Both the position numbers and the translations under genes were made by a program. From Scyliorhinus canicula (taxonomy: Eukaryota): a stretch of DNA of 64,000 bases. The stretch lies in contig NC_052162.1 in NCBI RefSeq assembly GCF_902713615.1, forward strand, positions 131,650,653-131,714,652, read 5' to 3'. Shown in pieces: positions 6,348 through 54,952 of this stretch. Position 1 is the stretch's first letter. Each line of letters starts with the position of its first letter. The notes under the pieces were generated by a model. The model was given only the letters and a program-made list of their open reading frames with translations, was not told the DNA's origin and ran no database searches.

Positions 6348-6378
<31 letters not shown>

Positions 6379-10310: not shown

Positions 10311-11138
10311 GAGTCGATGTCACAAGTAGGCTTACATTAACACTGCAATGAAATGAAATGAAAATCGCTTATTGTCACAAGTAGGCTTCAAATGAAGTTA
10401 CTGTGAAAAGCCCCTAGTCGCCACATTCCGGCGCCTGTTCGGGTACACTTAGGGAGAATTCAGAATTCTCAGCTGGTACGGGAATTGAACCCGCATTGCT
10501 GACCTTGTTCTGCATCACAAACCAGCTGTCCAGCCCACTGATAGGTTTTGAGATATTGGAAGATGTGAAGGGATACGGGGGATACTGTGGGAATACGGTG
10601 CTGTGGTACATCAGCCAATGCTCCCATTGAATGGGTCAGCAGGCTGGATGGGCCACATGGATGACTGCAGCTCATATTTGTTATGATCTCCTGCACAGGA
10701 AGCAGTTAGCTGAGCCTGGATCTGTCAATCACCCTGAATCAGTACCTTCAGGGCAATTGGGAGAGTGAATATTAGATACAGCAGAGTGAGAATGGAGGGA
10801 GAGTGTGTGGAATGGAGATTTACAGCTTTTGGAGAACGAGAGAGGAAAGAATGTTCCAAATGTCTGTTCTGAGTTTCTATCCTGTACTGACAGTGGTGAA
10901 TTTTGTAAATTGTTTTTACAGGATATTAGACAAGGAGGAATTACAGACAGAAATCTCAAACATTACGTCTCGATCTGACAGAGTCACTTGATTCCCTGAG
11001 ACCTGAATATCATCGGCCTTTGAATCAAGAAGGAGAAATGTTTGCCCAAACTGTCAGCTAAAGATTTCAAACATCAGTGTGACTGGAAAAGCACCGAGAC
11101 CCACAACACCCCCCCGAGTGAGAGTGTTCCAGTGAACT

Positions 11139-11448
11139 ATAATAGAACATAGAATATACAGACATCGAGTCTGCACCGACGCACTTAAGCCCTCACTTCC
11201 AACCTATCCCCGTAACCCAATAACCCCTCCTAACCTTTTTGGACACGAAGGGCAATTTAGCATGGCCAATCCACCTAACCTGCATGTCTTTGGATTGTGG
11301 GAGGAAACCAGAGCACCCGGAGGAAACCCACGTAGACACAGGGTGTACATGGAGACTCCGCACAGACAGTGACCCAGTGGGGAATCGAACCTGGGACCCT
11401 GGCGCTGTGAAGCCACAGTGCTATCCACTTGAGCTACCGTGCTGCCCC
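11139..11448 (-). mobile_element. HE1-like SINE inserted in ZNF A leader
   Basis: Absent from paralog E at AGTGAACT|GACTGT. Confidence 0.85.
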
Positions 11449-11451
11449 AAA

Positions 11452-11534
11452 GGGCTCATCTGGGATTTGAACCCAGGACCTCTCGCAAATTTCGAGACAC
11501 CTAAAGCGAGAATCATACCCGAGACCAACGAGCG
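11452..11534 (-). tRNA. tRNA-Pro-like pseudogene with 12-nt intron-like insert and TAG anticodon
   Basis: Minus strand reads GCTCGTTGGTCTCGGGTATGATTCTCGC-TT-TAG-G-[TGTCTCGAAATT]-T-GCGAGAGGTCCTGGGTTCAAATCCCAGATGAGCCC, close to the vertebrate tRNA-Pro body; D-loop and 5' end damaged. Confidence 0.85.
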
Positions 11535-11681
11535 CCTGACTGTGAAAAGAGCTTTAACCAGTTACACAGCCTGAAAAAACATCACGCCATTCACAGTGAG
11601 GACACACAGTCGACATGTTCTGTGTGTAGACAAGGCTTCCACTAATTGTCCAATCTGGAGAGACAGGAGGAGACCCAAAAC

Positions 11682-12167
11682 CTGGAGAAACCATGGAAAT
11701 GTGGGGACTGTGGAAAGGGATACTGTTTCCCATCTGAGCTGGAGATTCATCGACGCAGTCACACTGGGGAGAGGCGGCTCACCTGCTCTCAGTGTGGGAA
11801 AGGATTTACTGAAGTATACAGCCTGCAGAAACACCAGCGAGAAGTTCACATTGGGGAGAAGCCATTCACCTGCTCTCAGTGTGGGCAGAGATTTGGTAAT
11901 TCATCCCACCTATTGAGACACCAGCGAATTCACACTGGGGAGAGACCATTCACCTGCTCTCAGTGTGGGAAAGGATTTATTGATTCATCCACCCTGCAGA
12001 CACACCAGCGAGTTCACACTGGGGAGAAGCCGTTCACCTGCCCTCAGTGTGGGAAGGGATTCACTCGGCTATCTCACCTGCACTCACACCAGCGAGTTCA
12101 CACTGGGGAGAGGCTACTCGCCTCTCAATGTGAGACGGGATTGCCTGTTTCACCACACCTGCTGTGA
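11682..12167 (+). CDS. C2H2 zinc-finger gene A (5 fingers plus a degenerate 6th); canonical ATG replaced by CTG, possible pseudogene
   Basis: [13 protein letters not shown]..., TGEKP/TGERP linkers; no in-frame ATG in the ORF. Confidence 0.7.
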
Positions 12168-12633
12168 CACCAACAATTTCACAATCGATTACAGGGGTTG
12201 GATTCTGCTGTTATTTCTACTCTACACCCAGGACTGCATTTTGTTCATTCTGACAGGTGGTCAGTGGGGATGGTCGGAGGGTTTCTTTCTGCTGGACTGG
12301 CCGGTCTCACCACTTTGCCTCTAGTGGGCTGATGCTCTTTGAGATTTGTTGCAAATACCTGGCTTCAAATTGCGCAAGGATCACAGAGTGAAAGGATGTT
12401 TGGAAAATTGACTATATTTAGTTGCCATTTCTGTTTGGAACCCCATAAAGCATGCCACTTTGCCATGGGGATGGGCCCTGGTGGTTACATGGTTCTTTTG
12501 TTTAATTTATCTGGGTCCCTCACAGAAGAAAACTATCTGGGTATGAGGGGCAAGTTGTCTGGGGTGGACTGGGAAACTGATTGCTGCAGGGAATACCTAA
12601 CATTTAAGGAATTATTTAATATTTATCAGGGGG

Positions 12634-17287: not shown

Positions 17288-17299
17288 CTTGGTGTGTGG

Positions 17300-17875: not shown

Positions 17876-20635
17876 TAGATAAATACAGCACAGAACAGGC
17901 CCTTCGGCCCACGATGTTGCGCCGAACTTTTGTCCTTGGTTAATCATAGAATTTTGGACAATTTTTCATGGCCAATCCACCCAACCTGCACATCTTTGGA
18001 CTGTGGGAGGAAACCGGAGTACCCGGAGGAAACCCACGCAGTCATGGGGAGGATGTGCAGACTCCACACAGACAGCGACCCAAGTCGAAATCGAACTTGG
18101 GACCCTGGATCTGTGAAGCAATTGTGCTATCCACAATGCTACCGTGCTGCCCTTAAGAAGTTAACCTACACTCCATTATTCTACCCTAATCCATGTACCT
18201 ATCCAATAGCCGCTTGAAGGTCCCTAACTTTTCCGACTCAACTACTTCCACAGGCAGTGCATTCCATGCCCCCACTACTCTCTGGGTAAAGAACCTACCT
18301 CTGACATCCCCTCTATATCTTCCACCATTTATCTTAAATTTATGTCCCCTTGTAATGGTGTGTTCCACCCGGGAAAAAAGTCTCTGTCTACTCTATCTAT
18401 TCCCCTAATCATCTTATAAACCTCTATCAAGTCGCCCCTCATCCTTCTCCGTTCTAATGAGAAAAGGCCTAGCACCCTCAACCTTTCCTCGTATGACCTA
18501 CTCTCCATTCCAGGCAACATCCTGGTAAATCTCCTTTGCACCTTTTCCAAAGCTTCCACATCCTTCCTAAAATGAGGTGACCAGAACTGCACACAGTACT
18601 CCAAATGTGGCCTGACCAAGGTTTTGTACAGCTGCATCATCACCTCACGGCTCTTAAATTCAATCCCTCTGATTTAAAAATAAATAAATTTAGATTACCC
18701 AATTATTTTTTCTATTAAGGGGCAATTTAGCGTGGCCAATCCACCTACTCTGTACATTTTTGGGTTGTGGGGGCGAAACCCACGCAGACACGGGGAGAAT
18801 GTGCAAACTCCACACGGACAGTGACCCAGAGTCGGGATCGAACCTGGGACCTCAGCGCCGTGAGGCGGTTGTGCTAACCACTACCCCACCGTGCTGCCCT
18901 CAATCCCTCTGATAATGAACGCTAGCACACCATAGGCCTTCTTCACAGCTCTATCCACTTGAGTGGCAACGTTCAAAGATCTATGAACATAGACCCCAAG
19001 ATCTCTCTGCTCCTCCACATTGCCAAGAACCCTACTATTAACCCTGTATTCCGCATTCATATTTGTCCTTCCAAAATGGACAACCTCACACTTGTCAGGG
19101 TTAAACTCCATCTGCCACTTCTCAGCCCAGCTCTGCATTCTATCTATGTCTCTTTGAAGCCGACAACAGCCCTCCTCACTATCCACAACTCCACCAATCT
19201 TCATATCATCTGCAAATTTACTGACCCACCCTTCAACTCCCTCATCCAAGTCGTTAATGAAAATCACAAACAGCAGAGGACCCAGAACTGATCCCTGTGG
19301 TACGCCACTGATAACTGGGCTCTAGGCTGAATATTTGCCATCCACCACCACTCTCTGTCTTCTATCGGTTAGCCAGTTTGTTATCCAACTGGCCAAATTT
19401 CCCACTATCCCATGCCTCCTTACTTTCTGCATAAGCCTACCATGGGGAACCTTATCAAATGCCTTACTAAAATCCATGTACATTACATCCACTGCTTTAC
19501 CTTCATCCACATGCTTGGTCACCTCCTCAAAGAAGTCAATAAGACTTGTAAGGCAAGACCTACCCCTCACAAATCCGTGCTGACTATCCCTAATCAAGCA
19601 ATGCCTTTCCAGATGCTCAGAAATCCTATCCCTCAGTACCCTTTCCATTACTTTGCCTACCACCGAAGTAAGACTAACTGGCCTGTAATTCCCAGGGTTA
19701 TCCCTATTCCCTTTTTTGAACAGGGGCACGACATTCGCCACTCTCCAATCCTCTGGTATCACCCCTGTTGACAGCGAGGACGAAAAGATCATTGCCAACG
19801 GCTCTGCAATTTCATTTCTTGCTTCCCATAGAATCCTTGGATATATCCCGTCAGGCCCGGGGGACTTGTCTATCCTCAAGTTTTTCAAAACGCGCAACAC
19901 ATCTTCCTTCCTGACAAGTATCTCCTCAAGCTTATCAGTCTGCTTCACGCTGTCCTCTCCAACAATATGGCCCCTCTCGTTTGTAAATACTGAAGAAAAA
20001 TACTTGTTCAAGACCTCTCCTATCTCTTCAGACTCAATACACAATCTCCCGCTACTGTCCTTAATCGGACCTACCCTCGCTCTAGTCATTCTCATATTTC
20101 TCACATATGTGTAAAAGGCCTTGGGGTTTTCCTTGATCCTACCCGCCAAAGATTTTTCATGCCCTCTCTTAGCTCTCCTAATCCCTTTCTTCAGTTCCCT
20201 CCTGGCTATCTTGTATCCCTCCAGCGCCCTGTCTGAACCTTGTTTCTTCAGCCTTACGTAAGTCTCCTTCTTCCTCTTAACAAGACATTCAACCTCTCTT
20301 GTCAACCATGGTTCCCTCACTCGACCATCTCTTCCCTGCCTGACAGGGACATACATATCAAAGACACGCAGTAACTGTTCCTTGAACAAGTTCCACTTGT
20401 GTCCTTCCCTGACAGCCTATGTTCCCAACTTCTGCACTCAATTCTTGTCTGACAGCATTGTATTTACCCTTCCCCCAATTATAAACCTTGCCCTGTTGCA
20501 CGCACCTATCCCTCTCCATAACTAAAGTGAAAGTCACAGAATTGTGGTCACTACCTCCAAAATGCTCCCCCACTAACAAATCTATCACCTGCCCTGGTTC
20601 ATTACCAAGTACTAAATCCAATATGGCCTCCCCTC
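17876..20635 (-). mobile_element. CR1 LINE, 5'-truncated, ORF2 largely readable
   Basis: [55 protein letters not shown]; carries SINEs at ~17960-18152 and 18674-18899. Confidence 0.92.
18674..18899 (-). mobile_element. Short-tail SINE inside CR1; TSD TCAATCCCTCTGAT
   Basis: 14-bp direct repeat at 18660-18673 and 18900-18913. Confidence 0.88.
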
Positions 20636-21871: not shown

Positions 21872-23038
21872 TCAGCTCATATCGTGACTGAGTGATTCCC
21901 TTCCCACAGCATCGATGTTCGGTCTCGGCCCTTTGTGAACTTTCGCCTTAGTGTGACTTCGCTGATGTCTGAACAGGCTGGATGTCTGAGTGAATCCCTT
22001 CCCACACACTGAGCAAGTAAATGGTCTCTCCCTGGTGTGAACACGCTTGTGTATATGGAGATTCGATGAAGACATGAATCTCTTTCCACAGTATCTGCAG
22101 TTGAATGGTCTACCCTTGGAGTGCATTCGTTGGTGTAACATGAGCCTGGCTGACTGAGTGAATCCCTTCCCACAGGAGCAGCTGAACAATCTCTCCCCAG
22201 GATGGACACACTGGTGTGTTAGCAAGTAGGATGACTGAGTGAATCCCTTCCCACACTCCGAGCAGGTGAATGGCCTCTCCCCAGTATGAATCTGCTGGTG
22301 TTTCACAAGGTGGGATGACTTAGAGAATCCTTTCCCACATACGGAACAGGTGAATGACCTCTCCCCAGTGTGAACTTGTTGGTGCATCAGAAGCAGATAG
22401 GACAAGGTGAATCCTTTCCCACATTCAGAGCAGATAAATGGCCTCTCCCCAGTATGAACCCGCTGGTGTGTATGCAAGCTGGATACCTGAGTAAATCGCT
22501 TCCCACACGTGTAGCAGGTGAAAGGCTTCTCCCCAGTGTGAACTCGCTGGTGTGTAAGCAGGCTGGATAACTGAGTGAATCCCTTCTCACACCTGTAGCA
22601 GATGAATGGCCTCTCCCCAGTGTGAACTCGCTGGTGTGTAAGCAGGTTTGATAACTGAGTGAAACCTTTCCCACACTTGGAGCAGGTGAATGGCCTCTCC
22701 CCAGTGTGAACCCGCTGGTGTGCAGTGACGGCGGAAGAACAAGTGAATCCCTTCCCACAAGTGCAGCAGGTGAATGGTCGCTCCCCAGTGTGAGTGTATT
22801 GGTGTGCAGTGAGGGCAGACGAATGCCTGAACCTCTTTCCACAGAAAGTGCAGCTGAACGGTCTGTCTTCTGTGTGAATTCGTTGGTGTGACATCAAACC
22901 AGCTGATCGAGTAAATCCCTTCCCACACTCAGAGCAGGTGAACGGTCTCTCTCCTGTGTGAATACGTCGGTGGGTTTCCAGCAGGCATCGATAATTGAAT
23001 CCCTTCCCACAGTCCCCACATTTCCATGTCTTCTCCAT
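21872..23038 (-). CDS. C2H2 zinc-finger protein B (388 aa, 13 fingers, no effector domain)
   Basis: Intact ORF from [14 protein letters not shown]; finger 11 has CxC spacing; frameshifted 14th-finger remnant at the end. Confidence 0.92.
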
Positions 23039-23393
23039 AGTACTGGTGTCCTTGTATCTCTCAAGTTCAGACGATCAGTTGAAGACTTGTCCACACAGAA
23101 TACTTGAACGTTTTTTCCTGTATGTGAATGAAGCAGGCTGTGTAATTGGTTCAAACACTTTGCACAGTCAGCATACTGGAACACTGTCACTCAGATGTGT
23201 GTGTGTGTCTCTGTGCTCTTCCAATCACACTGACCGTTGAACTTTTCTCCCACAGGTAGAACAGAGAAACATTTCTCCTTCCACATTCAAAGACCATTGA
23301 TATCCAGGTACTGATGAAGCCATTAATTTGGCCAGATGCTGCTGTAATATTTGGTTTGAGTTTCCAGTCTTTGAATCCTCCCCTTTTAATACC
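23039..23393 (-). other. ZNF B exon leader (acceptor TTTTACAG|G), uORF 23272-23225, stop 23077-23075
   Basis: Homologous to the other four leaders. Confidence 0.7.
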
Positions 23394-23659
23394 CTGTAAA
23401 AGGTGTTTACAAACTATCAGTGCAGGATATAAATTCCGAACAGACAATTCTAGTTTCTCTGGAACATTTTTTTCCTTTCTTGTTCCCCCAAAGCTGTAAA
23501 TCCCCGTCCCAGATATTCTCCCTCCTCCCTGGGCTGAAATCTAAACCCATCTCACCATCTCCACCCAATTTCTTTCCTCTGCCTGGGTTCAGTTCTCCAG
23601 CCCCTGTCTGCAGACTGACAATAAAATCAATGGGTCAATCTTTTTCTCTCCTGGTCACT

Positions 23660-24190
23660 GGAACCCTGAAGCCCCGCCCACTCGGTGTTACGTCACCAAT
23701 ATGGCCGCACAAGCAGCCAATTCGCCGCTGGACCAAGATGATAACCGTCAACCCGGGCCTGCACCTCGTAAAAGCCTTGTCGCCTCAAACGGGCCTCCTG
23801 CAGCTGTTTGTTTAGGATTTGCGGCCTACACCGGGTGTCATTGAAGCCTCCTCGCCCTCCCGCCGCATCCACCTCCCTCCCGCGCACCGCCGCTCCTCAC
23901 CGTCAGCCAAGTAACAAACGTGTCACCTTCACACATACTGCGCATGCTCGGAACACTGCGCGGTACTGCGCATGCTCGGAACACTGCGCGGACCTGCGCA
24001 TGCGTTCCCGTTCCCTGTTGTGGGGACATTCTCCACCGCGGGGTCTCCTGGGTATTCGACCATTGTTCCCCTCACAGCTTCTCGGACGCATTGCGCATGC
24101 CCCGCGCAGACCGGCACGTTCTGAGAGCGGCCTTCCCGCGCCTGCCCGTCTCTGCCATTCTGAGAGAATGACGGCATCACCCGCGTGGTG
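23660..24190 (-). promoter_or_regulatory. CpG-island promoter of ZNF B with tandem NRF1-like TGCGCATGC motifs
   Basis: High CpG density; 28-bp repeat 23936-24004; CCAAT and GC boxes; candidate donor CG|GTGAGG near 23900. Confidence 0.7.
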
Positions 24191-24639: not shown

Positions 24640-24996
24640 CATAGAATTTACAGTGCAGTTCTATGATTATTAATGGCCATTCAGGCCATCAAGTCTGCAC
24701 CGGCTCCTGGAAAGAGCACCCTACCCAAGGTTAACACCTCCACCGTATCCCCATAACCCAGTCACCCCACCCAACACTAAGGGCAATTTTGGACACTAAG
24801 GGCAATTTATCATGGCCAATCCACCTAACCTGCACATCTTTGGACTGTGGGAGGAAACCGGAGCACTCGGAGGAAACCCACGCACACACGGGGAGGATGT
24901 GCAGACTCCGCACAGACAGTGACCCAAGCCGGAATCGAACCTGGGACCCTGGAGCTGTGAAGCGATTGTGCTATCCACAATGCTACCGTGCTGCCC
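24640..24996 (-). mobile_element. HE1-like SINE (an older plus-strand SINE lies at 24355-24625)
   Basis: Family motifs. Confidence 0.8.
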
Positions 24997-25230
24997 GAAA
25001 CATGAATCAATAATTTAGTTTTCTGGAATTCTAATTAGGAGTCGCAGATTGAATTAAGCCATCGGAAACAGGAGCAGGAGTCGGTTATTCAGCCCATGTT
25101 CTAACAATGAGAGGATATTTTGAAGCAAAAGGGATTTTGTGAAGCCAGGATGTGTAAAGAAATTGGATAGGAGCCCTGAGTCTTTGCTGCATTATCAACA
25201 GGTCAATAGAGTCAAGGATTACTTCCTGAG

Positions 25231-25456
25231 GGTCAGCACGGTGGCGCAGTGGTTAGCACTGCTGCCTCACGGTGCCGAGGTCCCAAGTTCGATCCTGGCC
25301 CTGGGTCACTGTCCATGTGGGTGGAGTTTGCACATTCTGCCTGTGTTTGCGTGGGTTTCACCCCCACGGCCCAAGATGTGCAGGTTAGGTGGATTGGCCA
25401 CGCTAAATTGTCCCTTAGTTGGAAAAAATGAATTGGGTACTCTAAATTTTTTTTTT
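25231..25456 (+). mobile_element. Short-tail SINE; 17-bp TSD AAGGATT(A/G)CTTCCTGAG
   Basis: Direct repeats at 25214-25230 and 25457-25473. Confidence 0.88.
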
Positions 25457-31780: not shown

Positions 31781-31784
31781 CATT

Positions 31785-37212: not shown

Positions 37213-37803
37213 TCACTTGTGAACTCGCTGGTGTCTCAGCAGGTGTTGTGACTGAGTGAATCCCGCTCCGCACAAGGAGCAGGTGAACCGTCTTCCCCCG
37301 GTGTGATCCCACTGATGTGTCAGCAGCTGGGATGACCAAGGGAATCCCTTCCCACACACTGAGCAGGTGTACGGCTTCTTGCCAGTGTGAGTGCGTTGGT
37401 GCTCACTGAGGTCAGCTGAGTCACTGAAACCCTCTCCACAGGTGATGCACCTGAATGGGTCCTGGTTTGTGTGCATTTGGTGATGTGATTGGAGGGTGAC
37501 TATCTGAGTGAATCCCTCCCCACACACAAAGCAAATGAATGGTTTCTGACCCGTGTGAATTCTCTGGTGTTCAGTGAGGATGGATAAGGACTTGAATTTC
37601 TCTCCACAGGTTGTGCAGCTGAATGGCGTCTTCTCAGCGTGAACTCGCTGGTGTAACCGAAGGCCAGATAACTGAGTGAATCCTCTCTCACATATTGAAC
37701 AGTTGAACGGCCTTTCCCCAGTGTGAACACGTCGATGGATTTCCAGCCGGGATGAAGAATTGAATCCTTTATTGCACTCCTCACATTTCCATGGTTTCTC
37801 CAT
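37213..37803 (-). CDS. C2H2 zinc-finger protein C (196 aa, 7 fingers)
   Basis: ATG at 37803 (MEKPWKCEEC); the track's 37839 start is TTG right after an in-frame TGA. Confidence 0.9.
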   Translation of the reverse strand: MEKPWKCEECNKGFNSSSRLEIHRRVHTGERPFNCSICERGFTQLSGLRLHQRVHAEKTPFSCTTCGEKFKSLSILTEHQRIHTGQKPFICFVCGEGFTQIVTLQSHHQMHTNQDPFRCITCGEGFSDSADLSEHQRTHTGKKPYTCSVCGKGFPWSSQLLTHQWDHTGGRRFTCSLCGAGFTQSQHLLRHQRVHK

Positions 37804-38132
37804 GGTATCAGTTTCCCTGGGTCTCTCCAGTTTGGACAATCAGTTGAAGCTTTGTCCACACACACAGAACATGTGTACGGTTTGTCCCCACTGTGATTTT
37901 TTTTTTTTACAGGCTGTTTCAGTGGTTAAAGCTCTTTCTCCAGTCCGTCTTCATTTTTTTCCTGTCACACTGATGTTTCAATTGGTGCTACCCCGACACA
38001 ACATGCAAACATTTCTCCTTCCAAATTCAAAGACTGATGATATTCACGCCGTGGTGAATCAGTGACTCTGTCAGATCATGCTGTGATGTTCAATGTGAGC
38101 TTCCTGTTTGTAAATCCACCCATTCTAATGCC
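37804..38132 (-). other. ZNF C exon leader (acceptor CTTTCCAG|G), uORF 38012-37965, stop 37842-37840
   Basis: Homologous to the other leaders. Confidence 0.7.
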
Positions 38133-38679
38133 CTGGAAAGGGAGTTTACACAAATTTAAATACAGGAAAGAAATTCTGAAGACAATTTTATTTTCCATGA
38201 AGCACGTTTTCCTCACTTGCACCTGCAAAGCAATAAATCCTAATCCCATACATTCTCCCACCTCCCTGTGCTGGAATGCAGATCTCAGGTTTACTAATTA
38301 TTTTGCAGGATAGTCCTGTATTTGAGTCCACTGTCCCAGGCTGCATGGATGCTGTTTGTCCAACAAATTGGACCTTTGTCAAGGAATAGAACCCTGTTCT
38401 TTACTGTCTGTGTTCCAGCAACTCTGGCAGAAACTGCCCCCACACGGCCTAGCCTCAGCTTTGGTGGAATCCCACCCACCACTCACATGGTCTTCCAGGG
38501 CAGGCTGTGCCTTCATTTACACCGTAAGAGTTGGACAGCCCGTCAAACCATGCTCGCTATTACAACCCTTACACTTTACCCCCTCCCTCCATTCTGGCCG
38601 GGTTCAGATCTCAACTCCCTCTGACCACAGTGAGTATAAAACCAATGAATCACCATTTTCTCTCCTGGTCACTGGAATC

Positions 38680-39500
38680 CTCAAGCACCGCCCACTCCCG
38701 GCTGTTCCACCAAGAAGGCCGCACGTGAAGCAAACAAGCACCTCAGCTGCAAACCAGGGAGCTGCCAATGATTCTGAAGGGTTTCCTCCAGCTCACAATG
38801 CCCGGGAGTGATTGACAGCAGGTACTGACCAATGGGACGAACTCGAGCGGCTGGTCTTCCAACCAATCAGAGTGAATGGATGGGGCAGAGCCTTGGGCTC
38901 AATGTCTGCGCATGCGCCAGGCCAAACACAGTCGCCCGAGGAAGATGGCGGCCGTGAACTCGGGCCTGTGTCGGGGAAAAGCCCGAGCAGCTCTCGCCGG
39001 TTCAAATGCCGTATCTCAGCCGCATTGGAGGTTTCAGGCCTGCGCGGGGTGTTTATGAAGCCTCCCCACTCTCACGCTGGCTCTATTCCTCCCTGAGGAC
39101 TCACCCGACGGCGTGTCACAGCCAAAACTTTCAACGCAACCGCCTCAATCCTGAGCAATGAACGGCTCTGTTCGGGGCCCTCCGGGCTCAGTCCCGCCCC
39201 TCGTTCACTCCGATTGGTTGGAGGACCAGAAGCGTCCGTTCGGTCCTCCAGACTCACCCGTTGCATTCTATTGGTCCAGAGGTGCCGTCAATCATTCCCG
39301 TCCATTGTGAACTGGAGCATGCGCAGTACCGACGCTGGGCTCGGCCGGGAGGTTTCACTGAAACCCGGTGGAGGCTCCAAACCCCAATAAGAAGTTTCCG
39401 GGCCCGGGTTTGCATCGAGCGGGGGGACAGCTGCGGCCTGCTCCCGGTGACAGGCCTGAGTTAACGGCTTTTTAGAGGCTGCAAACCCGCAGGGGGCAAA
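38680..39500. promoter_or_regulatory. Bidirectional CpG-island promoter between ZNF C (-) and D (+)
   Basis: Inverted pair of CCAAT modules (38791-38895 + and 39185-39312 -); NRF1-like TGCGCATGCGC ~38907 and ~39318; YY1-like AAGATGGCGG 38942. Confidence 0.75.
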
Positions 39501-39569
39501 ACATCAGAGATCGAGTTTGTTGTGAAACCCCCAATGGGATATTGTAAAACAGGAGGTCAGGATTACAGT

Positions 39570-40330
39570 CAACAACAACAACTTCTATTTATATAACACC
39601 TTTAACATCATAAATCATCCCAGTCAACTTCGCAGGAACATTATAAAACAAAGTGAGACACCCAGACACAAAAGGAGATATTAGGACAGGTGACCAAAAA
39701 CCTGATTAAAGAGGTGAGTTTTAAATTGAGTCTTAAAGGGGGAAATTGATGTGGAGACGGGGAGGTTTTGGGAGGGAATCCAGTGCTTGGGGCCGAGGGA
39801 ACTTAAAACCATGGCCGCAAGTGGCACACTAGAGAGTGCACAAGTGGCCAGGATTTGAGGTGTGCAGATATCTCAGCGGGTTATGGGGCTGGAAGAGATT
39901 CCAGTGAGGGAGAGATGAGGCCATGGAGGGATTTGAAAACGGGTGGGAATTGACTGGGAGCCAATGCAAGTCAGGAAGCAGAGGGGTTAACGGGGAAAAT
40001 AAATTACTGTGAATTATGTTTGCAGATGTTTGGGTGACTTCAAGTTTATGGGAGAATGTGAGAGAGCAACCAGGAATGTATTGGAACAGTCAAGTCTGCA
40101 GCATACAGAAGCATGAATTGGCTTTAGAACCAGATGCATTGAGTCAGTAAGTGGAAACAGGCAGTCTTAGTGATGGCATAGATATGAGATCAGAATCTCA
40201 TCTTGGGATCAAATGTGACACTGAGGTTGCAATGGGACTGTTACCAGGGAGAGGGGTGGATTCGGTATTTTGGGAATGGGGATTGGAGTAGGGACTGAAA
40301 ACAGTGGCTTCAGTTTTCTCAATATTTAAT
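39570..40330 (-). mobile_element. Old L2-like LINE 3' fragment
   Basis: (AAC)n-TTCTATTTATATAACACCTTTAAC tail; degenerate body. Confidence 0.5.
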
Positions 40331-40788
40331 TTGAGTTAATTAGGCAACAGGAAGAGAACCAGGAATCAGAATAGGCCCTGAGACTGATATCAGGCTTAAC
40401 TTAGTTGGAGTAGTACAGCAAGGACAGAAATCCTGGGAGGTTTGGAGAAACCACCTTCATGATTGCTCATTAAATCTCCACACAGTTAGTTCTAAACACA
40501 AGTCTGTTATTCTGCCTGGTCGGTCAGGGTGATTCAGATCAATGTTTGTCACAAGACAGCATTGAAGTGAATTATCAAACATGTTGTTACGTTAGTTGTA
40601 TAAATTTGTTCAAAGAGGAAAGAAAGAATTATCTGACACTTTATTTGGATTTCAGACCAGGGAGGAGGGTGTGTGGGATGGGGATTTACAGCTTTGGGGG
40701 AACAAGACAAAAAAATGAAACTAAAACTGTTAATTCTGAATTTCTATCCTGGACTGACAATTGTGACCGTTGAAAATTCCTTTTACAG

Positions 40789-41113
40789 GATATTAGGAGA
40801 GGATTTGTGCAAAGGAAAATGAAACCAAACTTCACTTCAAGGTCTTCAGAGTCAACAGGACTTGGACATTCTCAGACTTTGAATATGGAAAGAGAAATGT
40901 TTGTCTGATCTGCCGGTGTGTAAATATTTAAAACATCAGTGTGACTGGAAAAGCATCGAGACCCAGACACACATTGAGTGAGAGTGTTCTCGTAAACTGA
41001 CTGTGGAAAGAGGTTTAACCAGTTACACAGCCTGAAAAAACATTACACCATTCACAGTGAGGAGAAACCATACACGTTCTGTGTGTGGACAAGATTTCAA
41101 CTGATAGTCCAAC
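40789..41113 (+). other. ZNF D exon leader (acceptor TTTTACAG|G), uAUG 40897, stops TGA-TAG 41102-41107
   Basis: Homologous to the other leaders. Confidence 0.7.
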
Positions 41114-41815
41114 ATGGAGAGACAAGATGACACCGACATCATTGAAAAAACATGGATATGTGGGGACTGTGGGAAGGCATTCACTTGCCCATCCAAGCTG
41201 GAAACTCATCGACGCGTCCACACCGGGGAGAGGCCCTTCAGCTGCTCTTTATGTGGGAAAGATTTCACTCAGTCATCTAACCTAGCGTTACACCAGCGAG
41301 TTCACACTGGAGAGAGGCCGTACACCTGCTCTGTCTGTGGGAAAGGATTCATTCAGTCATACAATCTAGCATTACACCAGCGAGTTCACACTGGGGAGAG
41401 GCCATTCACCTGCTCTGTATGTGCAAAGGGATTCGTTAATTCATCTAACCTAGTGGCACACCAGCGAGTTCACACTGGGGAGAAACCATTCAGCTGCACC
41501 TCCTGTGGAATGAGCTTTAGGCTTTCATCCACCCTGCTGAAACACCAGCGAGTTCATACTGGGGAGAAACCATTCAGTTGCCCTGACTGTGGAAGGAGCT
41601 TCAGGCACTCGGGCAGTCTCATTGTACACCAGCGCGCTCACACTGGGGAGAGGCCATTCACCTGCTCCATGTGTGGGAAGGGATTCACTGATTCATGCCA
41701 ACTGCTGAGACATGAACGGGTTCATACTGGGGAAAGGCCGTTCACCTGCTCTGAGTGTGGCAAGGGATTCATTGATTCATCCCAACTGCTGAAACACCAG
41801 CGACGTCACAAGTGA
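41114..41815 (+). CDS. C2H2 zinc-finger protein D (233 aa, 8 fingers)
   Basis: Intact ORF with TGERP/TGEKP linkers. Confidence 0.92.
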   Translation: MERQDDTDIIEKTWICGDCGKAFTCPSKLETHRRVHTGERPFSCSLCGKDFTQSSNLALHQRVHTGERPYTCSVCGKGFIQSYNLALHQRVHTGERPFTCSVCAKGFVNSSNLVAHQRVHTGEKPFSCTSCGMSFRLSSTLLKHQRVHTGEKPFSCPDCGRSFRHSGSLIVHQRAHTGERPFTCSMCGKGFTDSCQLLRHERVHTGERPFTCSECGKGFIDSSQLLKHQRRHK

Positions 41816-42729
41816 CTCAGGGATTGGATTCTGCTATTATTGCTGCTGTTATTGACAACCAGGCCCGAATCACATTAGTTCTGACAGATGGGGTTTGTTT
41901 CTGCTAATATTAATCCACTGTTTTACTGGGCTAGACTTTATTATTCTGGATCCATAGCTGATTGTGTTCTCGGGGCTGCAGTGTCACTTCTGGAAACGCT
42001 GTCTATGATCTTTCCCCATAATCCAGGAAGTCCCATCAGAAATTAGTTCACAACAAGATTCTGGACTTTTACTTCAATCTCAAAATTGATATTTTGTGTG
42101 AAACTCTATAATTGAGTGTCTGAAAGTTCTGCTGATTAACATCTTCAATTAGAAAGTGCTGATTAATCCTTGTGACAATTCTTACTGACCTGTACATTAC
42201 ACACAGAGACACCTCTGTTATTGGCCAGTGAGACGGGAATTGGTGGAGAATCGAGCATTCCCGAATGTTATCCTCCCATCTGATACAGAAATCCTTCGGC
42301 ATGGGAATAGAGACAAGTTGAATCCAAGTAACAACTATAAGAAATGGCTATCTAAAAACCATATAATATCTTTTGCGATTTATGGAATATTTACAGAAAT
42401 AGCTCACTCTCATAAAGAAAGCTTCCCCAGCAGCTTTCTGGGTGATGAACACAGGACAGACCTGTTCCCTCTGCCAAGGGTATAACTCTAGCAGGGCCCT
42501 GAAACAAGAGATTTCTAACCCCTGATACGATTGGATCTCAGGACACAGAGCCTAAAGCAGTTGTCTGTCTGTGAATGTTGAAACAGGCTCTCAAGAGCAA
42601 ATAGATTTTGAAGTGATCGACACTGACTTTAGGCCAACACGACACTCTGGCTCACACCAAGTAGCTGTTCAGAGGAGAATGCCGTCACCAGCTACAGAGA
42701 CCAGAACTCACTCATCCGTCCGTTGGTCC

Positions 42730-44025: not shown

Positions 44026-44114
44026 TTTCTAAGCATATTTAGAAAGAACCAATTGAGTTGAAGAGGGTTCAGAATCAGTTAGAAAATATCCACAAGGTGG
44101 AGGCAGGTCACCAT

Positions 44115-46294: not shown

Positions 46295-49200
46295 TTTAAT
46301 GTTTTGTGTTTTTTATACGAGTTTTGTTAGTGATGACCTGCTCCGTTTATCTACACGCAGCAGGAATATAACCCTGCATCCGCTGCCTATTCTGGCGTAA
46401 AGTACGGCGTGACAACTAAGTAAAAGAACAAAACTGAGGGACAAAATCAAAAGGGGGGTGCTCCAAAAAGAAAGCAACCGGAGCACAGCCCAAAAGGAAT
46501 CAGAAAGGAAACGGAAACTTAACAAAACCCATCAAATCACGGAACGCCTCAAGTGTGCCCGTGGACACCGCATGCCTCCGCTCCAGGAACACCCGGTCGC
46601 GAACAAGGCTGCGGAAGATGGGCAGACAGGTCGGATGACCCCCCTCGGTCGCCCGCTGCCTGGACCTATTAGCAGGTTTGGCCAGGCCCAGGAGCAGCTC
46701 ACGAGAAGGTCCACTGCCTTCCCCACCCCCTTTCGTACCGGATCTCCGTAGATCAGGAGCTTGGGGCTGAAGTGCAAAGAAAACCTCAACAACTGTCAAG
46801 AAACCAAAAAGAGAGTGCAGCCTTGGACAGACAACATAAACGTGCTCCTCGGTCTCCGACAGGTCGCAAAAGTGGCAGGTCTCTGGGGAGGCCGTGTAGT
46901 GGCTTAACCTACTGGTTCACGGCAATGCCTTGTGCAGCACCCTCCACCCCAGGTCCCCAGGTTTTATAGGGAGGATGCCTCCGTAGAGGGATTTCCAGTG
47001 GAGGCCTCGGATGGCTTTGGCCACGCACTGGACGGACACCACTCTGCGCTCGGCTAACACATAGGGCATCATCCAGCCCACCCCTCCAACACCCAGCATG
47101 TCCCCAATCCTGGTCACCGCGGCATCCACAGCCCTCCACTCTGACAGCCACCGGAATGGATATTGGCAGAGGTACGGATTCCTGAGCAGCGGCTCCCTTA
47201 CGAGAGCCACCACTCCTAACAGGGGAGAGCTGTGGGGCATCGCGATCATGTTCCAGACTTTGAGAAGGTCCTGGTACAAGACGGGAAGTGCCAACAAAGA
47301 ACTCCGAAGACCCTGCTGGTCGACGAACAGGAGTTGCACGTTGTAGTTCAAGCCGTGAACCTGGCGGAAGAAATACGTCGCCAGGGCACACCATCGTGGA
47401 GGAGGCTCAACGTACAGGTATCGCTGCAGAGTCTGAAGACGTAGAGTCGCGATCTGGGTGCATTGGCATACCAGCGCCTGTAGCCCTCCGCAATCGGGAG
47501 ACTCAAGACCTCTGCAGCGACCCTCTGCAATCCATTGTCCCAGAAGAACCGAATCAGAGTTCTCTGGCTGCGTGTGACAAAGTCAGGGGGAGGGGTCAAA
47601 GTGACCAGCCGATACCACAGCATGGAGGCAACCAGCTGGTTTATGACGAGAACTCGACCCCTGTAGGACAGCACTCAGAGCAGTCCTGTCTAGCGGCCTA
47701 GGCAAGTGGTGACCTTGGTCTCCAGTTCCTGCCAGTTTGCCGACCAGGCTTCCTCTGCCGGGCAAAGATAGACTCCCAAGTAGAGGATGTTGGTCAGGCT
47801 CCAGCTGAAGGGTCTGAACTCCTCTGCGGGGGTGGGGGGGTCATTTGCCACAGACCAGGAGTCCGGAACACTTAGCCCAGTTGCTCCTAGCAGAAGACGC
47901 GACAGAGAAAACAGCCTGGCACTCTCGCATCCTCCGCAGGTCACCGGGGTCAGTGAACATGAGGAGCACGTCATCAGCGTCAGCCGAAAGGACCACCACC
48001 ATGCCCGGCTCGCGCAGAACGAACCCCGACAACCTCCTCCGCAGGAGGCGCAGGAAAGGCTCCACACAGAGAAAGAAGTTGGCCGGACAAAGGGCAGTCC
48101 TGACGCAAAGCGATTATCGTAAATGGTGTGGTCTGGGACGACGTAGGACTGGTCAGGGTGGATCATGGTGGACCATTTTAGATGGCCACAAGAGATCAGA
48201 ATAAAAGTTCCTGACTGGAGTTCTGACCCCCTCCGGATCCGAGACGAGGGACCCGTCGTCGGCCAGCAGCGAAGAAACCCCAGTGAGTAGAAGAAGGGGA
48301 TGCCGCAGAAGACTGATCCGCGCCCTCACGTACGCGCCGTGGGACCCGACAAGTTGCAGGTCCCGCAGTGTACCCTTCTTCTCTCTGTACACCAGCCCCA
48401 GGGCCGGGTCCAAATCGGGCTGAGCAAGACGTGACTCCAGATCAAAGACTTCTTCAGCCAATTTGGTGATCTTGGATTTCCGCCCGGCAGTAGACCCCTT
48501 CGTGTACCCCTGACAGAAGGCACGACGTGAGTCTTGCCCACGTTCCACCATCGCCTCAAGGAGGGGAAGTCACCCCGCTTCCTTCTCCAGCCGGCCCAGA
48601 AGCGGCGTAATGAATCCAGGAACCACTCGTTCTCCAGCAGCACATTGTTAAAGTGCCAGTACGCGGACCGTGTCTGAGTGCGGGTAGGAGTGAGCCCCGC
48701 TCACACCAGGTGGTGATCGAAGCACAGCACCTGCTCCACAGAGGCCGTCGGAACACTGGGCAAGTAAGTCTTAGAAATGTAAAGACGGTCGATTCTGGAC
48801 GTGCCGAACAGAGGGCGCACAAACATGTACACCCGCGATTCAGGATGGAGAGTTCGCCAGACATCCACCAAGCTGACCAGGTCCCTCAACTTCACCACCG
48901 CCTGCATGTTCCGCTGGACTCTACCACGGTTCTTGTCCTGGAGGGTGCAATTGAAATCCCCTCCGAAGGCGATGCACTCGCCCACAGGGATGGTGCCAAG
49001 AAGAGTGGACACTTTGTCAAATAAAGTCGTCTGCTGCGGCCCGGCCCGGGGAGCGTATACATTCACAAAGTGAAGCACCACGTCTCCGTCGCGGACTGTT
49101 AAATGCAACAGACAGCCTGGCACTGTATCCTTGACCCTCAAGATCTCGGGCTGAAAATGTGGAGCCAACAAGATAGCCACGCTGCCCGATCGTGGGGCCA

Positions 49201-52140
49201 AGTGACTTATGAAGATCCCATTGCCACTTAGCTTCGTCCCCCGGAATGGTGTGGGTTTCTTGCAGGAAGCACACCACGCACTTTCCGTCCCGGAGGACAG
49301 CGAAGCACTGGAAATGGTGAAGCGCGTCCTTGCTGCCATGGATGTTGAGGCTGGCTATGGTTACCTCCATGTCAGTTGTAGCGTGTATCCTTCACCAACC
49401 ACCCGGAACTCGCAGGAGGTAGAGGGTTGCCGCCCAATCCACTCCCTCAGGAGCCCCGCGAGGAACAGGACAGCTTGGTGCTGCCCCCCTGGTCCTGATC
49501 GAATTCCCGTGCCTCTCTGGCATAGACGTTGGTGGTCTTGAGGTGCAGCCCCAGATTTCGCCAGCTGTCCAGGGCTAGCCGCACACAGTCCTGGTGACCG
49601 TGATGCTTTTTCAAAAACGCTCGGAGTTCCCAGAGGGGATGAGGGGAGACTCGGTGCCGGACGTAAGGGCGCCCTCTGCCTTGCTGCAGAGAGGGACTAA
49701 ATCCTCCTCCTCACCCGTCAACGAGCAGCTGTCCTCCTCCGAGTGTCACCGCCTGGCTCGAGTCCCCCGCCACATGGAGTGTGGCGGGAAAACGGTCCAT
49801 CGGCTAGCCCTTGGCCCGAGTCGATCCCGCCCCCAGGATCACCCTCAGACAGGTTCCTCACAGGCTCCCCAGCAATTCAGGGTCTGTGGACGGTGGCGCC
49901 TCCGACCCTGACTCCGCGTCAATGCCGGGCTCTCGGAGAGACCCCGGAAGACCCCAGGAACAGCTCCGGGATGGAACCTGGGCTCCCTGGCACCGTCTGC
50001 TTGGGTGTTGCGAGCGGGGAGCCTTCCTTTCCGTCGCCCGCCCACGACCTGAATATGTAAGGGCACTGGGGGCTGCTGCTGGCCACCGCCGATGAACAAA
50101 ACGAGGTGACCGGTGAGTAAAACTGCATCGGACGGAACAAGTTCTCGGGGGTCGCGTCGCCACCCGGCCCCGGGCCATCTGGGATTGTGGCGAGGCCGGA
50201 ACAGCCTCCAGCTAAGGGCTGTACACAGGGTCTACACCGCCCTCCGGAGCACGTGTGGTGGTCTCTCCGGACCCCTCAGATTGTTGCGGTGCGGCGGCGG
50301 CGTCCCGAGGTAAGGCTGCATTCTCGGAGTTGGTCTGGGCGGGCACGAGATCAGTAGTTTTGACAGGGTCTGGATGGGCCTGGTCCGACCAGCGTGCCGT
50401 CTTTCGTCTGGCCTTTTCAGGCCATCTCTGGTCCAGTGGAGGCTCCCTCTCCCCCTCCCCAGACCACCCTCCCGAAGGCCGAGCTTTAGCGGCACCACCC
50501 CGGACCAAACCTCCCCCAGTAGGTTGAGATGGGGGAGGAGCTCGGTGGGGAGTCAGGGCGGGACGTTGGAAAGAACGACACGTTCGGCGGTGGCCTCCAG
50601 CGGGTCTACTACCACGTGTGTCCCGCCCACCGTGAGCCCCCTTTCCAGGACACGGTGGACCGCCTGCTCGGCCCGCAGGAAAAACACAGCCTTGCCGTAC
50701 ATCCACGAGGCGGCTACGAGGGTCCCACGACCCCGGCCATCACACGAGTGCACGCCTCGATGGTCATGGTGGGGTGGGCACAGCACTTAGAACATAGAAT
50801 ACAGCACAGTACAGACCCTTCAGCCCACAATGTTGTGCCGACCACTTATCCTAATCTAAGATCAACCTAACCTACACCCCTTCAATTTACTGCTGTCCAT
50901 GTGCCTGTCCAAGAGTCGCTCAATGTGCCTAATGACTCTGACTCCACCACCTCCGCTGGCAGTGCATTCCACACACCCACCACTCAGTGTAAATAACCGT
51001 TTGGATTAAAATCCCCTCCCGAATCCCTCTCCACAGCATCAAAATTTTGTGGCGGTGTGTTACAGTTCACTCGGAGCCCCAGGTTGCTGTGACCCCATGC
51101 ACTTTTACATGCGTGCTGTAGTCTGGAGCTAGTCATGGACGGTGATACAAAGACCAAAGAAAATTACAGCACAGGAACAGGCCCTTCGGCCCTCCCAGCC
51201 TTCGCCGATCCAGATCCTCTATCTAAACCTGTTGCCTATTTTCCAAGGATCTACCTCCCTCTGTTCCCCGTCCGTTCATATGTCTGTCTAGATGCATCTT
51301 AAATGATGCTATCGTGCCCGCCTCTACCACCTCCGCTGGCAAAGCGTTCCAGGCACCCACCACCCTCTGCGTAAAAAATTTCCACGCAAATCTCCCTTAA
51401 ACTTTCCCCCTCTCACCTTGAAATCGTGACCCCTTGTAATTGACACCCCCACTCTTGGCAAAAGCTTGTTGCTATCCACCCTGTCCATACCTCTCATAAT
51501 TTTGTAGACCTCAATCAGGTCCCTCCTCAACCTCCCGCCTTTCCAACAAAAACAATCCTAATCTACTCCACCTTTCTTCATAGCTAGCACCCTCCATACC
51601 AGGCAACGTCCTGGTGAACCTCCTCTGCACCCTCTCTAAAGCATCCACATCCTTCTGGTAATGTGGCGACTAGATGGAAGACGATCCCACTTTCTTACCA
51701 ACTGCCCAGGAATCTCTCTCGTTCCCAATGCCGTGTGTTGAAAGGGTTTACAGGTTGACAATCAACCTGTTTGACCACGTTATGGAGGTGTTACCTTGGC
51801 CATCAAGCCCCAAATTGCCGTGTCAATAGGCGGAAGGGCAAAGGGGCAGCGGAGGGTTGAGAGGCTGCTGCCCCTGCATAGGTGGTCCTTGGCCACCCTG
51901 CCCCCCGGCAGAGGGGAATGCCCCTGGGGTGCTGCCCATGCCCACACCTGGGACAACCGGGCCCTGTATCCAGGTTCAGGGTGGTAGGGGGAGGGGGGGA
52001 ATGGATGTGGCACCGCAACAGCTGGTGCCACAAGGGAAGGTGCTGCAGGGCAACAGCAGGTGGCGACTATGAGCGGGGCACCGTTCTTCAGCCCTGGAGG
52101 GGCCTAAAGCAATGACCCAGGCTGCCCCACAGCCGGTGAA
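46295..52140 (-). mobile_element. Near-full-length Tx1-clade LINE (ORF1 + APE/RT ORF2), degenerate, interrupted by CR1 fragments at 50790-51670
   Basis: APE: MEVTIASLNI..FLQETH, GGDFNC, SRIDRLY; RT: ADADDV, LYLGVY, LSYRGRVLVINQLVASMLWY; ORF1: ASWMYGKAVFFL. Confidence 0.85.
51148..51670 (-). mobile_element. CR1 LINE 3' fragment
   Basis: DLIEVYKIMRGMDRV...TRGHDFKV. Confidence 0.8.
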
Positions 52141-52204
52141 AAGGTGGGCGGACGGCGCTCTTCAGCCCTGTTGGGGCCAAAACAGAACCCTTGGTCTTCA
52201 CAGC

Positions 52205-52495
52205 AACCCCAGGTAGTCCCACTCCCACCTCAGGCAGAGGGGTGGGAGGACAGAGTCTGCAGTCCCAGGTGGTCCCACCTCAGGCAGAGGGGCGGGAGGA
52301 CAGAGGGCAGGGTCTGCAGTCCCAGCTGGTCCCACTCCCACCTCAGGCAGAGGGATGGGAGGACAGAGGGCAGGGTCTGCATTCCCAGGCGGTCCCACTC
52401 CCACCTCAGGCAGAGGGGCGGGAGGACAGAGGGCAGGGTCTGCAGTCCCAGGTGGTCCCACCTCAGGCAGAGGGGTGGGAGGTCAGAGGGCAGCA
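52205..52495. repeat. G-rich minisatellite, ~60-66-bp unit, ~4.5 copies
   Basis: CCCACCTCAGGCAGAGGGGCGGGAGGACAGAGGGCAGGGTCTGCAGTCCCAGGTGGT repeated. Confidence 0.88.
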
Positions 52496-52574
52496 GGAGT
52501 GGGGAGGGGAGGGACAGAGACAGGAACAATCAGCCAGTTAGCCTGAGCCTATGGCCGCTCTCACCATCTGTAAC

Positions 52575-52995
52575 CGTCACAATGCCCGGGAGATTGACGG
52601 CAGCTCCCGACCAATAGGCTGAGAGGGGCGGGTCTGGAGGACCGACCTTGAGTGGCTGATCAACCAATCGGAGAGAATGAGAGGCGGGGCCCGCTGTGAT
52701 TGAAGCATGCGCAGTGTGGGTAGCGGCGACGCAGAGGGTGTTGGGGTGTTTCCTTCAGATCTGAAATTGGTATGAAGCAAGTAACAATATGGAGGGAGCG
52801 AGAGATTGCGGGGGTGGGCGGAAACGTTATGTAAAGGTGTTGTGAGCCGCAATCCTCGGAAAAGAGCTCACTTGACTAATTTTGTTCTGAGCGGACCTGC
52901 AGCTCCTCATCGTCGGCTCGGGTTAACAGCCGCCATCTTTATTGGATGTGCATCAGGGCGCATGCGCGTTTCTCATCTTTGTCGGGGCGATGTTT
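52575..52995 (+). promoter_or_regulatory. CpG-island promoter of ZNF E
   Basis: Same two-CCAAT/GC-box module; NRF1-like GCATGCGCA ~52705 and GCGCATGCGC ~52958; YY1-like CGCCATCTT ~52931. Confidence 0.7.
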
Positions 52996-54578
52996 CAATG
53001 AGTGGGAGGAGCTTGTTCCCCATTGTTCAGAATGGAGACAACTTGTCCATCAAACTGGATTAGTCCAGTGATGGATTTTTAATAATGATTATTATATTAC
53101 TATAATTTGGGGAAAAGCTTTTTCAAGAAGATTCGCAGCTCCACAAAGTGTTTCCAACTTCTCAAACCAATCTCCTGAACAGGTTTACCCATTTATTTGA
53201 CTAAAACGATGGTCCCTGGTCGCATTGTGGCACAGCGGTTAGCACTGCTGCCTCACGCACCAACGACCATAACCTTTATTGTCACAAGTAGGCTTACATC
53301 AACACTGCAATGTAGTTACTGTGAAAAGCCCTTAGTTCCCACATTCCGGCGCCTGTTCGGGTACACAGAGGGAGAATTCAGAATGCCCAATTCACCTAAC
53401 AAGCACGACTTTTGGGAATTGTGGGAGGAAATCGGAGCACCTGCAGGAAATCCACGCAGACGTGGGGAACGTGCAGACTCCGCACAGACAGTGACCCAAG
53501 CCGGGAATCGAACCTGGGGCCCTGGTGCTGTGAAGCAACAGTGCTAACCATTTAGTATAATTTAGCATATTCCAGTTTGGGACCCGGGTCACTGTCCATG
53601 TGGCGGTTGCACATTCTCCCCGTGTCTGCATGTGTCTCACCCCAAAGATGTGCAGGGCAGCTGGATTGGCCACACTAAATTGCCCCTCAATTGGAAAAAA
53701 TAATTGGTTATTCTGAATATATTTTTAAAAAAGATGGTCTCAATTAAAGTGGTGGGTTCCCCAGGAGATGGTTGACATTTCAGGGAACAGTAGATTAATA
53801 ATGGACCGAGATATGTCTCGTGTTGTTGTATGGCACAGATTAAATATATTACTTAAGGCTCTGTAATAAAGTAAATTTATGATTATTTCTTGCCTTGTAT
53901 TTTAAGACTGTAGCTACATTATAGATTTCCAGTCATCTCTTCCCTCAGAGGGTTGTTAGTCTTTGGATTTCTCTTCCACAGGGACCAGTTGTATCTGGGG
54001 ATCATTAAATATATTGAAGCACAATTTTGACAGATATTTTATTGACAATGGAGTTAAGGTTATGGGGAACAGGTTGGAAAATAGAGAGAAAGCTGAGATG
54101 AGGAGGGATCTCTTCACTCGAGGATGTGGGGAAGCTTTGGAATTCTGTACTCTAGAGGAATGTGGAGCCTCAGTCATCAGGTATGTTCAAGCCAAATATT
54201 TATAGGTTTCTAGATATTGAGGGATATGGGGATCGTGTGGGAAAATGGTGCTGAGGTAGATCGGCCAAGGTTGAATGGTTGAACAGACTTGGTGGGCCGA
54301 ATGGCCTACTCTTCCTCCTATTCTAATCTCTGTGTCCTGGTCAGGAAGCAGTGAGCTGAGCTTTGATCTGTCAATCAACATGAATCAGCACCTTCAGGAG
54401 AATTGGGAGGGTGGATATTAGATACAGCAGAGTGAGAATGGAGGGAGATTGTGTGGGATGGAGATTTACAGCTTTTGGAGAACAAGAGAGGAAATAATGT
54501 TCCGTAGGAACTCAAATTGTCTGTTCTGAATTTCCACTCTGCTCCAACAATGATGACTTTTGCAAATTGGTTTTAAAG

Positions 54579-54952
54579 GATATTGGAAGAGGAGAAATTA
54601 TAGACAGAAATCTCAAACATCACGTTGCAATGTGACAAACTCACTCGACTCCTTCTGATCTGAATATCATCGGGCTCTGAATATCATCGGCGAGAAGGAG
54701 AAATGTTTGTCCAATCTGTCGGCTTCAACTGTGGATACATCAGTGTGACTGGAAAAGCACTGAGACCCACAAAACACACACACCCGAGTGAGAGTGTTCC
54801 AGTGAACTGACTGTGGAAAGAGCTTTAACCAGTTACACAGCCTGAAAAAGTATCACACCATTCACAGCGAGGAGAGACAGTGCACATGTTCTGTGTGTAG
54901 ACAAGGCTTCCACTGATTGTCCAATCTGGGGAGATACGAGGAGACCCAGAAC
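54579..54952 (+). other. ZNF E exon leader (acceptor TTTTAAAG|G), uAUG 54703, stop 54914-54916
   Basis: Homologous to the other leaders; closest to A. Confidence 0.7.

Follow-up and report, generated by a model that had tools for sequence, protein, structure and literature searches.

Is the leader shared by a cluster of shark zinc-finger genes a device that controls translation, or is it simply what is left of a lost coding region? The question is raised by a stretch of 64,000 nucleotides from Scyliorhinus canicula (contig NC_052162.1, positions 131,650,653 to 131,714,652; hereafter the window, with all coordinates counted from its first letter), which holds five C2H2 zinc-finger (ZNF) genes: A(+), B(-), C(-), D(+) and E(+). 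An earlier note on this DNA had proposed that N-terminal fingers were converted into a selected regulatory leader, in which an upstream AUG (uAUG), its upstream open reading frame (uORF) and a stop 13 codons before the start position gate translation by damping or reinitiation. Our analysis favours a plainer answer, which we consider probable: a pseudogenised N-terminus is carried as a passive 5' leader, and the uAUG and the stop at -39 are relics kept by descent.

The five upstream regions are homologous and can be aligned from about 160 nt before a common splice acceptor (TTTTACAG/G) through the finger arrays. The motif that contains the uAUG, GAGAAATGTTT, has five exact matches, one per gene on the gene's own strand, at 11033 (A), 23267(-) (B), 38007(-) (C), 40892 (D) and 54698 (E); seven matches are found when one mismatch is allowed, versus 1.85 expected. 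It is followed in all five leaders by TCAGTGTGA, at a spacing of 45 nt in B, C and D, 42 nt in A and 43 nt in E. Each copy also has a stop in the finger frame whose distance to the canonical start is 39 nt; this stop is TAA in A and TGA in the others, with a TAG directly behind it in D. The motifs, their spacings and the position of the stop are as the earlier note had described them. Its 'canonical MEKP start', by contrast, holds as a start codon for only part of the cluster, since the position is ATG in B, C and E only and reads CTG in A and ATT in D. The start positions and the leaders that precede them are listed below.

11682 (+) in A; 23038 (-) in B; 37803 (-) in C; 41141 (+) in D; 54953 (+) in E: canonical start positions
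10922..11681, plus strand: leader of gene A; uAUG at 11038-11040, -39 stop TAA at 11643-11645
11138..11535, plus strand: insertion of 398 nt resembling a short interspersed nuclear element (SINE), with tRNA-derived segments; splits fossil finger ii of the A leader
23039..23393, minus strand: leader of gene B; uAUG at 23270-23272, -39 stop TGA at 23075-23077
37804..38132, minus strand: leader of gene C; uAUG at 38010-38012, -39 stop TGA at 37840-37842; 42-nt deletion relative to the other copies
40789..41113, plus strand: leader of gene D; uAUG at 40897-40899 (3-codon uORF), ancestral-type ATG at 40885, stops TGA-TAG at 41102-41107
54579..54952, plus strand: leader of gene E; uAUG at 54703-54705 (35-codon uORF), -39 stop TGA at 54914-54916

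Stops close all three frames of the leader in each of the five copies. A second ancestral stop (FQ*TDCGK) is left in three of them, as TGA in A and E and as TAA in D; the same codon is TAT in B and is deleted in C. The ancestral-type ATG of 'NMEGK' is kept in D only. Altogether the decayed coding sequence makes up the first 330-375 nt of the large exon, or about 760 nt in A with the SINE included; no intact tRNA was called by ARAGORN in that insertion (11138-11535). Reading the -39 TGA as a readthrough or selenocysteine codon was considered and ruled out, as further stops and frameshifts lie upstream and the codon is TAA in A and TGA-TAG in D.

The origin of the leader can be seen by looking at relatives in which it is still intact. 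With the 45 N-terminal residues of E as the query, a family was retrieved that has members in Mustelus, Scyliorhinus, Heterodontus, Cetorhinus, Chiloscyllium and Pristiophorus as well as in rays. Relatives with an open frame across the region homologous to the leader include P0122, P0125, P0130, P0132 and P0133 from sharks and P0134, P0135 and P0137 from rays, in which a basic spacer (..GIRRGRFKVRKLKPSITSGSDRV..PEYH..LNMEGKS..) is followed by a finger (..EKPYTCSVCGRGFS[Q/R]SSGL..H..). When the N-termini of P0122, P0125, P0132, P0133 and P0135 were aligned with the five leaders by tblastn, E-values of 1e-15 to 1e-29 were obtained, with the stops and frameshifts visible in the alignments; the claim that the leader is built from dead zinc fingers is thereby confirmed. 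Since the frame stays open across this region in the intact shark and ray relatives, the leader represents the pseudogenised N-terminus, a basic spacer and about three fingers, of an elasmobranch C2H2-ZNF family. No Pfam effector domain, KRAB or other, was found in the N-termini of the intact relatives.

This homology also gives the two shared motifs a place in the former protein. The -39 stop corresponds to helix position -1 in the last fossil finger (iii), where relatives have Q or R, and an origin from CGA to TGA is plausible. The shared uAUG lies within the linker-like 'EGEM' at the beginning of fossil finger i. In B, C and E, the main AUG occupies a linker position directly ahead of the first intact finger, where the sequence reads 'xMEKPWKC' as compared with 'xGEKPWKC' in relatives. 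Annotated relatives such as P0121, P0126 and P0129 begin at MEKPWKC or MGKPWKC, those with a start at the MEKPWKC position include Mustelus and Chiloscyllium, and one relative called in ENA begins 12 residues earlier, as expected for a start right behind a -39 stop. Since the -39 stop is common to all five copies and the second stop to three, we infer that the N-terminal disabling is older than the duplications. Care must be taken with public models of family members, several of which look chimeric or inconsistent in frame. For instance, P0121 joins fingers to a reverse-transcriptase (RT) tail from a long interspersed nuclear element (LINE), P0127 starts in sequence resembling a transposable element, and the model of P0132 reads the spacer twice, in two frames. 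The 5'-end annotation of this ZNF family in other sharks is unreliable.

A leader can only act on, or be carried by, a transcript in which it occurs. Logan contigs from four RNA runs of the same organism were placed on 37000-42000 and the B region was also covered, so that RNA was examined for B, C and D. Spliced contigs join the upstream exon of D at 39713 to the large exon at 40789 (run X8) or 40800 (X1, X6), and that of C, on the minus strand, from 39105 to 38132; all introns are GT..AG. The corresponding features are as follows.

39105..39363, minus strand: upstream exon of gene C; minimum extent from RNA contigs
38133..39104, minus strand: intron of gene C; GT..AG, from RNA contigs
39473..39713, plus strand: upstream exon of gene D; minimum extent from RNA contigs, donor AG/GTGAGT at 39713/39714
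39714..40788, plus strand: intron of gene D; an alternative acceptor 11 nt downstream gives an exon start at 40800

Contigs of C and D are continuous across the uAUG, the -39 stop and the start (e.g., 37743-38035 in C and 40787-40960 in D), and in B they tile 23009-23467 without a gap, from the coding sequence (CDS) through the leader. The leader is thus present in mature transcripts, as attested by the spliced contigs of C and D and the continuous ones of B. The conserved acceptor of the earlier note is used in C and D, and use of a downstream acceptor in its place was not borne out. One B contig crosses the acceptor at 23393/23394 into the intron, to 23467, and represents an unspliced or alternative form. 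The B junction is masked in the contig-joint data by an abundant SINE at about 24.6-25.6 kb, and a loose end at 23385 is unplaced. Over 24640-25580 the depth of RNA contigs is extreme, the summed word depth reaching about 1.9 million, and their loose ends read GAATCGAACCTGGG...GCGCTGTGAA; this element belongs to an abundant tRNA-derived SINE family, and one of the same kind is inserted in the A leader.

Whether the leader is regulatory or passive, it matters whether the genes behind it still encode proteins. A rival reading, in which the decay of the N-terminus marks the death of each gene as a whole and the five loci yield pseudogene transcripts or non-coding RNAs with untranslated finger ORFs, can draw on several observations: no copy has an intact N-terminal coding region, several uAUGs precede each open reading frame (ORF), A is without any ATG, E terminates within a finger, and the ORFs of the window have no annotated protein entry in a collection of 15 billion proteins. 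The finger arrays themselves speak against it. Each is a single exon of C-x2-C-x12-H-x3-H units with TGEKP-type linkers, and 7-12 intact units are retained in B, C, D and E.

11646..12167, plus strand: finger ORF of gene A; 173 codons without any ATG, 4 intact fingers of about 6, premature end
21872..23038, minus strand: CDS of gene B; 388 aa, 12 intact C2H2 fingers, ATG at 23038 in the context ACTATGG
37213..37803, minus strand: CDS of gene C; 196 aa, 7 intact fingers, ATG at 37803 in the context ACCATGG
41114..41815, plus strand: CDS of gene D; 233 aa, 8 intact fingers, start 27 nt upstream of the canonical position
54953..55735, plus strand: CDS of gene E; 260 aa, 9 intact fingers, stop inside the tenth finger

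At about 25% divergence, the ORFs of 196-388 codons have stayed open and show no frameshifts, whereas the adjoining 350-nt leaders each hold several stops and indels. Across the alignment the leader has 15 or more indel events, most of them with lengths not divisible by three, as opposed to a single 3-nt indel in the aligned coding part. Over the first 58 real codons the synonymous divergence (dS) is 0.71 and the nonsynonymous divergence (dN) 0.22, a ratio of about 0.3, and third positions are more variable than first and second ones; read in the frame of the fossil fingers, the leader gives a 'dS' of 0.28 and a 'dN' of 0.27, a ratio of about 1. An AUG in strong context has been retained or replaced as well. 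The main AUG contexts ACCATGG, AACATGG and ACTATGG all have A at -3 and G at +4, and D has gained an ATG at -27, directly past the stops. Together with the annotated Mustelus and Chiloscyllium relatives that start at the same MEKPWKC position, these data make a wholesale loss of coding function improbable. Purifying selection acts on the finger ORFs in B-E; this is doubtful for A, which is probably a pseudogene given its early stop and a finger ORF without ATG. Other protein searches added little: with the whole B protein the top matches were generic vertebrate poly-ZNFs only, and a search of representatives with the 45-aa N-terminus was uninformative, as giant multi-finger proteins were ranked by summed score.

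With finger ORFs under purifying selection behind it in B-E, the leader could in principle be a selected module, and the test of this lies in whether it is better conserved than its neighbours. The comparison was made among the five copies in the window, which amount to effectively four lineages.

Intron 3' end: 158 columns, mean pairwise identity 0.76, invariant ungapped columns 55%, K 0.29
Leader: 384 columns, mean pairwise identity 0.74, invariant ungapped columns 51%, K 0.32
First 176 nt of the CDS: 179 columns, mean pairwise identity 0.757, invariant ungapped columns 54%

The fraction of variable columns does not differ between leader and intron (Fisher P = 0.52), and B, C and D share 71-78% identity in their 3' flanks. 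The proposal of a regulatory module finds its best support in the uAUG motif, an 11-mer invariant in all five copies and the longest invariant run of the alignment, ahead of runs of 9 and 8 nt; in a distance between stop and start that is free of indels in all five; and in the occurrence of the leader in mature mRNA. However, when the invariant and variable labels were shuffled across the 588 ungapped columns (53% invariant), a run of at least 11 arose in 21% of trials and two runs of at least 9 likewise in 21% (P = 0.21), and the chance of 39 nt without an indel is about 0.22, and that of any given triplet being invariant about 0.13. The motifs are also retained in A, despite its ORF without ATG, its leader SINE and its decayed fingers. 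Changes in A versus its sister E, polarised with B, C and D, number 13 versus 15 in the leader and 12 versus 7 in the coding part. The consensus fold of leaders B-E is weak and its covariation term unfavourable, and neither a structured element nor covarying RNA structure was found there.

The architecture of the uORFs points in the same direction. The uORF that begins at the shared uAUG is 7 codons long in A, 15 in B and in C, 3 in D and 35 in E, and its frame relative to the main ORF is 2, 0, 2, 1 and 1, respectively. The -39 stop ends a uORF in C only, and the start that it would gate is itself variable, being CTG in A and ATT in D. In addition, each leader exon has 3-6 uAUGs in all, the shared one included, and in C there are ten with the upstream exon counted. 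What is expected of a conserved uORF is therefore found in one respect, a uAUG kept in all five copies; the length, frame and termination of the uORF are not conserved, and no constraint above that of neutral neighbours is seen. A uORF- and stop-gated regulatory leader is, on this evidence, an unlikely explanation, and the persistence of the motifs, to which the earlier note had given weight, does not exceed expectation. Because they are no better conserved than the neighbouring intron, the shared uAUG and -39 stop look inherited, kept by descent with no selection detectable among five copies.

Several considerations weigh against so passive a view of the leader. The three longest invariant runs are all confined to it. 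Some constraint may act on the intron comparator too, which consists of about 160 nt beside the acceptor. In 585 colinear nt of the finger array, third codon positions give a K of about 0.50, compared with about 0.3 for leader and intron, which could mean mild constraint on both. Over the securely orthologous first 58 codons, the variable third positions amount to 59% versus 49%, which is not significant (P = 0.18), and finger turnover or non-orthologous fingers may inflate the third-position K further along the array. Weak selection on a few bases could also lie below the detection limit of five sequences, and the translation start sites used throughout are predicted positions. These points leave some room for an intermediate possibility, namely that the finger-only paralogs form a maintained elasmobranch subfamily (e.g., competitors of intact members) whose leader, the uAUG included, is a weakly selected translational damper; we give it only a small chance. 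Least credible of all is that the leader motifs are kept alike by gene conversion, either between paralogs of the cluster or with intact fingers as donors to fossil ones: the conserved blocks do coincide with the most uniform finger positions (linker and Cys knuckle), which would favour ectopic conversion, but no pair has leader identity raised over its intron and 3' flanks, copy-specific indels persist in the leaders, and the fossil fingers hold diagnostic changes of their own that are not found in intact fingers.

Descent of a dead N-terminus can be set out as a simple history. The N-terminal coding region would have been disabled once, in the ancestor of the cluster, and then copied passively with each tandem or inverted duplication. 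Transcription would begin in an upstream exon, whose splicing to the single large exon at the conserved acceptor is seen for C and D. A finger-only protein is predicted to begin at an AUG in strong context, which is the linker-position AUG in B, C and E and the one at -27 in D; A has none. To reach it, ribosomes would have to get past the 3-6 uAUGs of the leader exon, and past further ones in the upstream exon, by leaky scanning or reinitiation, and protein output is probably low or damped, as with any long uAUG-rich leader. Both motifs would be relics, the uAUG of a codon in the linker region of fossil finger i and the -39 stop of helix position -1 in fossil finger iii. The case is probably one of ordinary truncated ZNF genes restarting at a linker-position AUG, a by-product of birth-and-death evolution.

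Other features of the window concern the upstream exons and the spaces between the genes. C and D are transcribed in opposite directions from a 3.3-kb region in which their first exons are near to each other or interleaved, with the upstream exon of C at 39105-39363 (-) and contigs tiling 38915-39711. Within this region, 38838-38876 and 39204-39242 form an inverted 39-nt repeat, each arm of which contains the CCAAT-box-like CCAATCAG, and the interval looks like a bidirectional promoter. At 38946-39091 (+) there is weak translated similarity (E = 0.005, in two adjacent pieces) to the N-terminus of Heterodontus P0123 (MAAINPGLSLGE...VFMKPH..AGSIP), which may mark a conserved upstream exon or promoter-proximal sequence of this C2H2-ZNF family. 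Upstream of B, on the minus strand, a 28-nt tandem repeat of 2.4 copies at 23936-24003 carries GCGCATGCGC-like motifs that resemble NRF1 sites; it lies in a GC-rich patch about 550 nt upstream of the B acceptor, with a GT donor-like site near 23900. The patch is a candidate promoter and first exon of B, and none of the RNA contigs covered it. Upstream of E, 118 nt at 52577-52688, in the orientation of E and about 1.9 kb upstream of its acceptor, are 75% identical to part of the C upstream exon; this segment is a candidate first exon of E, and its likeness to that of C suggests that the duplication unit once took in the first exon. A 63-nt tandem repeat of about four copies (86-89% match) occupies a GC-rich stretch at 52246-52493, also upstream of E.

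Elsewhere, about 3 kb of CT/AG-rich low-complexity repeat at 6100-9300 produces long spurious ORFs in several frames (LSLS.., CCCS.., ERERE..). Between the ZNF genes, LINE-like ORFs are found at 19322-20389 (-) and 48701-49339 (-), one with a piece of reverse transcriptase (..YMDFSKAFDKVPHGRL..), the other with an endonuclease-like piece (..FGGDFNCTL..).

The nearest precedent for such a gene is human ZNF252, a member of the KRAB-ZNF cluster at 8q24.3. Its KRAB-B box is broken by a stop, and N-terminal coding sequence is carried untranslated; its longest ORF begins within the last exon, which encodes the fingers, and its 3' untranslated region contains degenerate ones (PMC2865497). The genes described here are likewise expressed ZNF genes that keep a disabled N-terminal part in the transcript, with an internal ORF in the finger exon and degenerate fingers left untranslated. 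Their leader is homologous to the N-terminus of relatives and, although closed by stops and frameshifts, is transcribed (RNA for B, C and D). Unlike in ZNF252, where a KRAB box has decayed and the degenerate fingers are 3', it is a spacer and about three fingers on the 5' side that have decayed; moreover, the state is common to five diverged paralogs, and a Pfam effector domain is undetected even in intact relatives. The cluster also resembles poly-ZNF clusters under birth-and-death evolution, with tandem and inverted duplicates, a single finger exon, finger loss by point mutations and in-frame stops, and live next to dead copies (PMC2865497). It departs from such clusters in general in that the decay is limited to the 5' end and common to all copies, and in that a putative replacement start occupies the linker position. 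Leaders of the GCN4/ATF4 type are similar in being long and in having several uAUGs before a main AUG in strong context, but here the number, length, frame and stop position of the uORFs vary among copies and conservation is not above that of neutral flanks. A literature search found no description of chondrichthyan ZNF leaders.

No new regulatory mechanism is revealed by this five-gene leader, and a note of caution follows from it, as motifs common to a few paralogs can be plain inheritance. The results can be of use in annotating shark ZNF clusters, where start codons must be chosen, pseudogenes called and models that read the spacer in different frames sorted out. For the family itself, the case shows a ZNF cluster spreading a truncated form of the gene, in which an ancestral loss of the N-terminus is followed by a predicted restart at a linker-position AUG and the decayed coding sequence is carried along as a 5' untranslated region.

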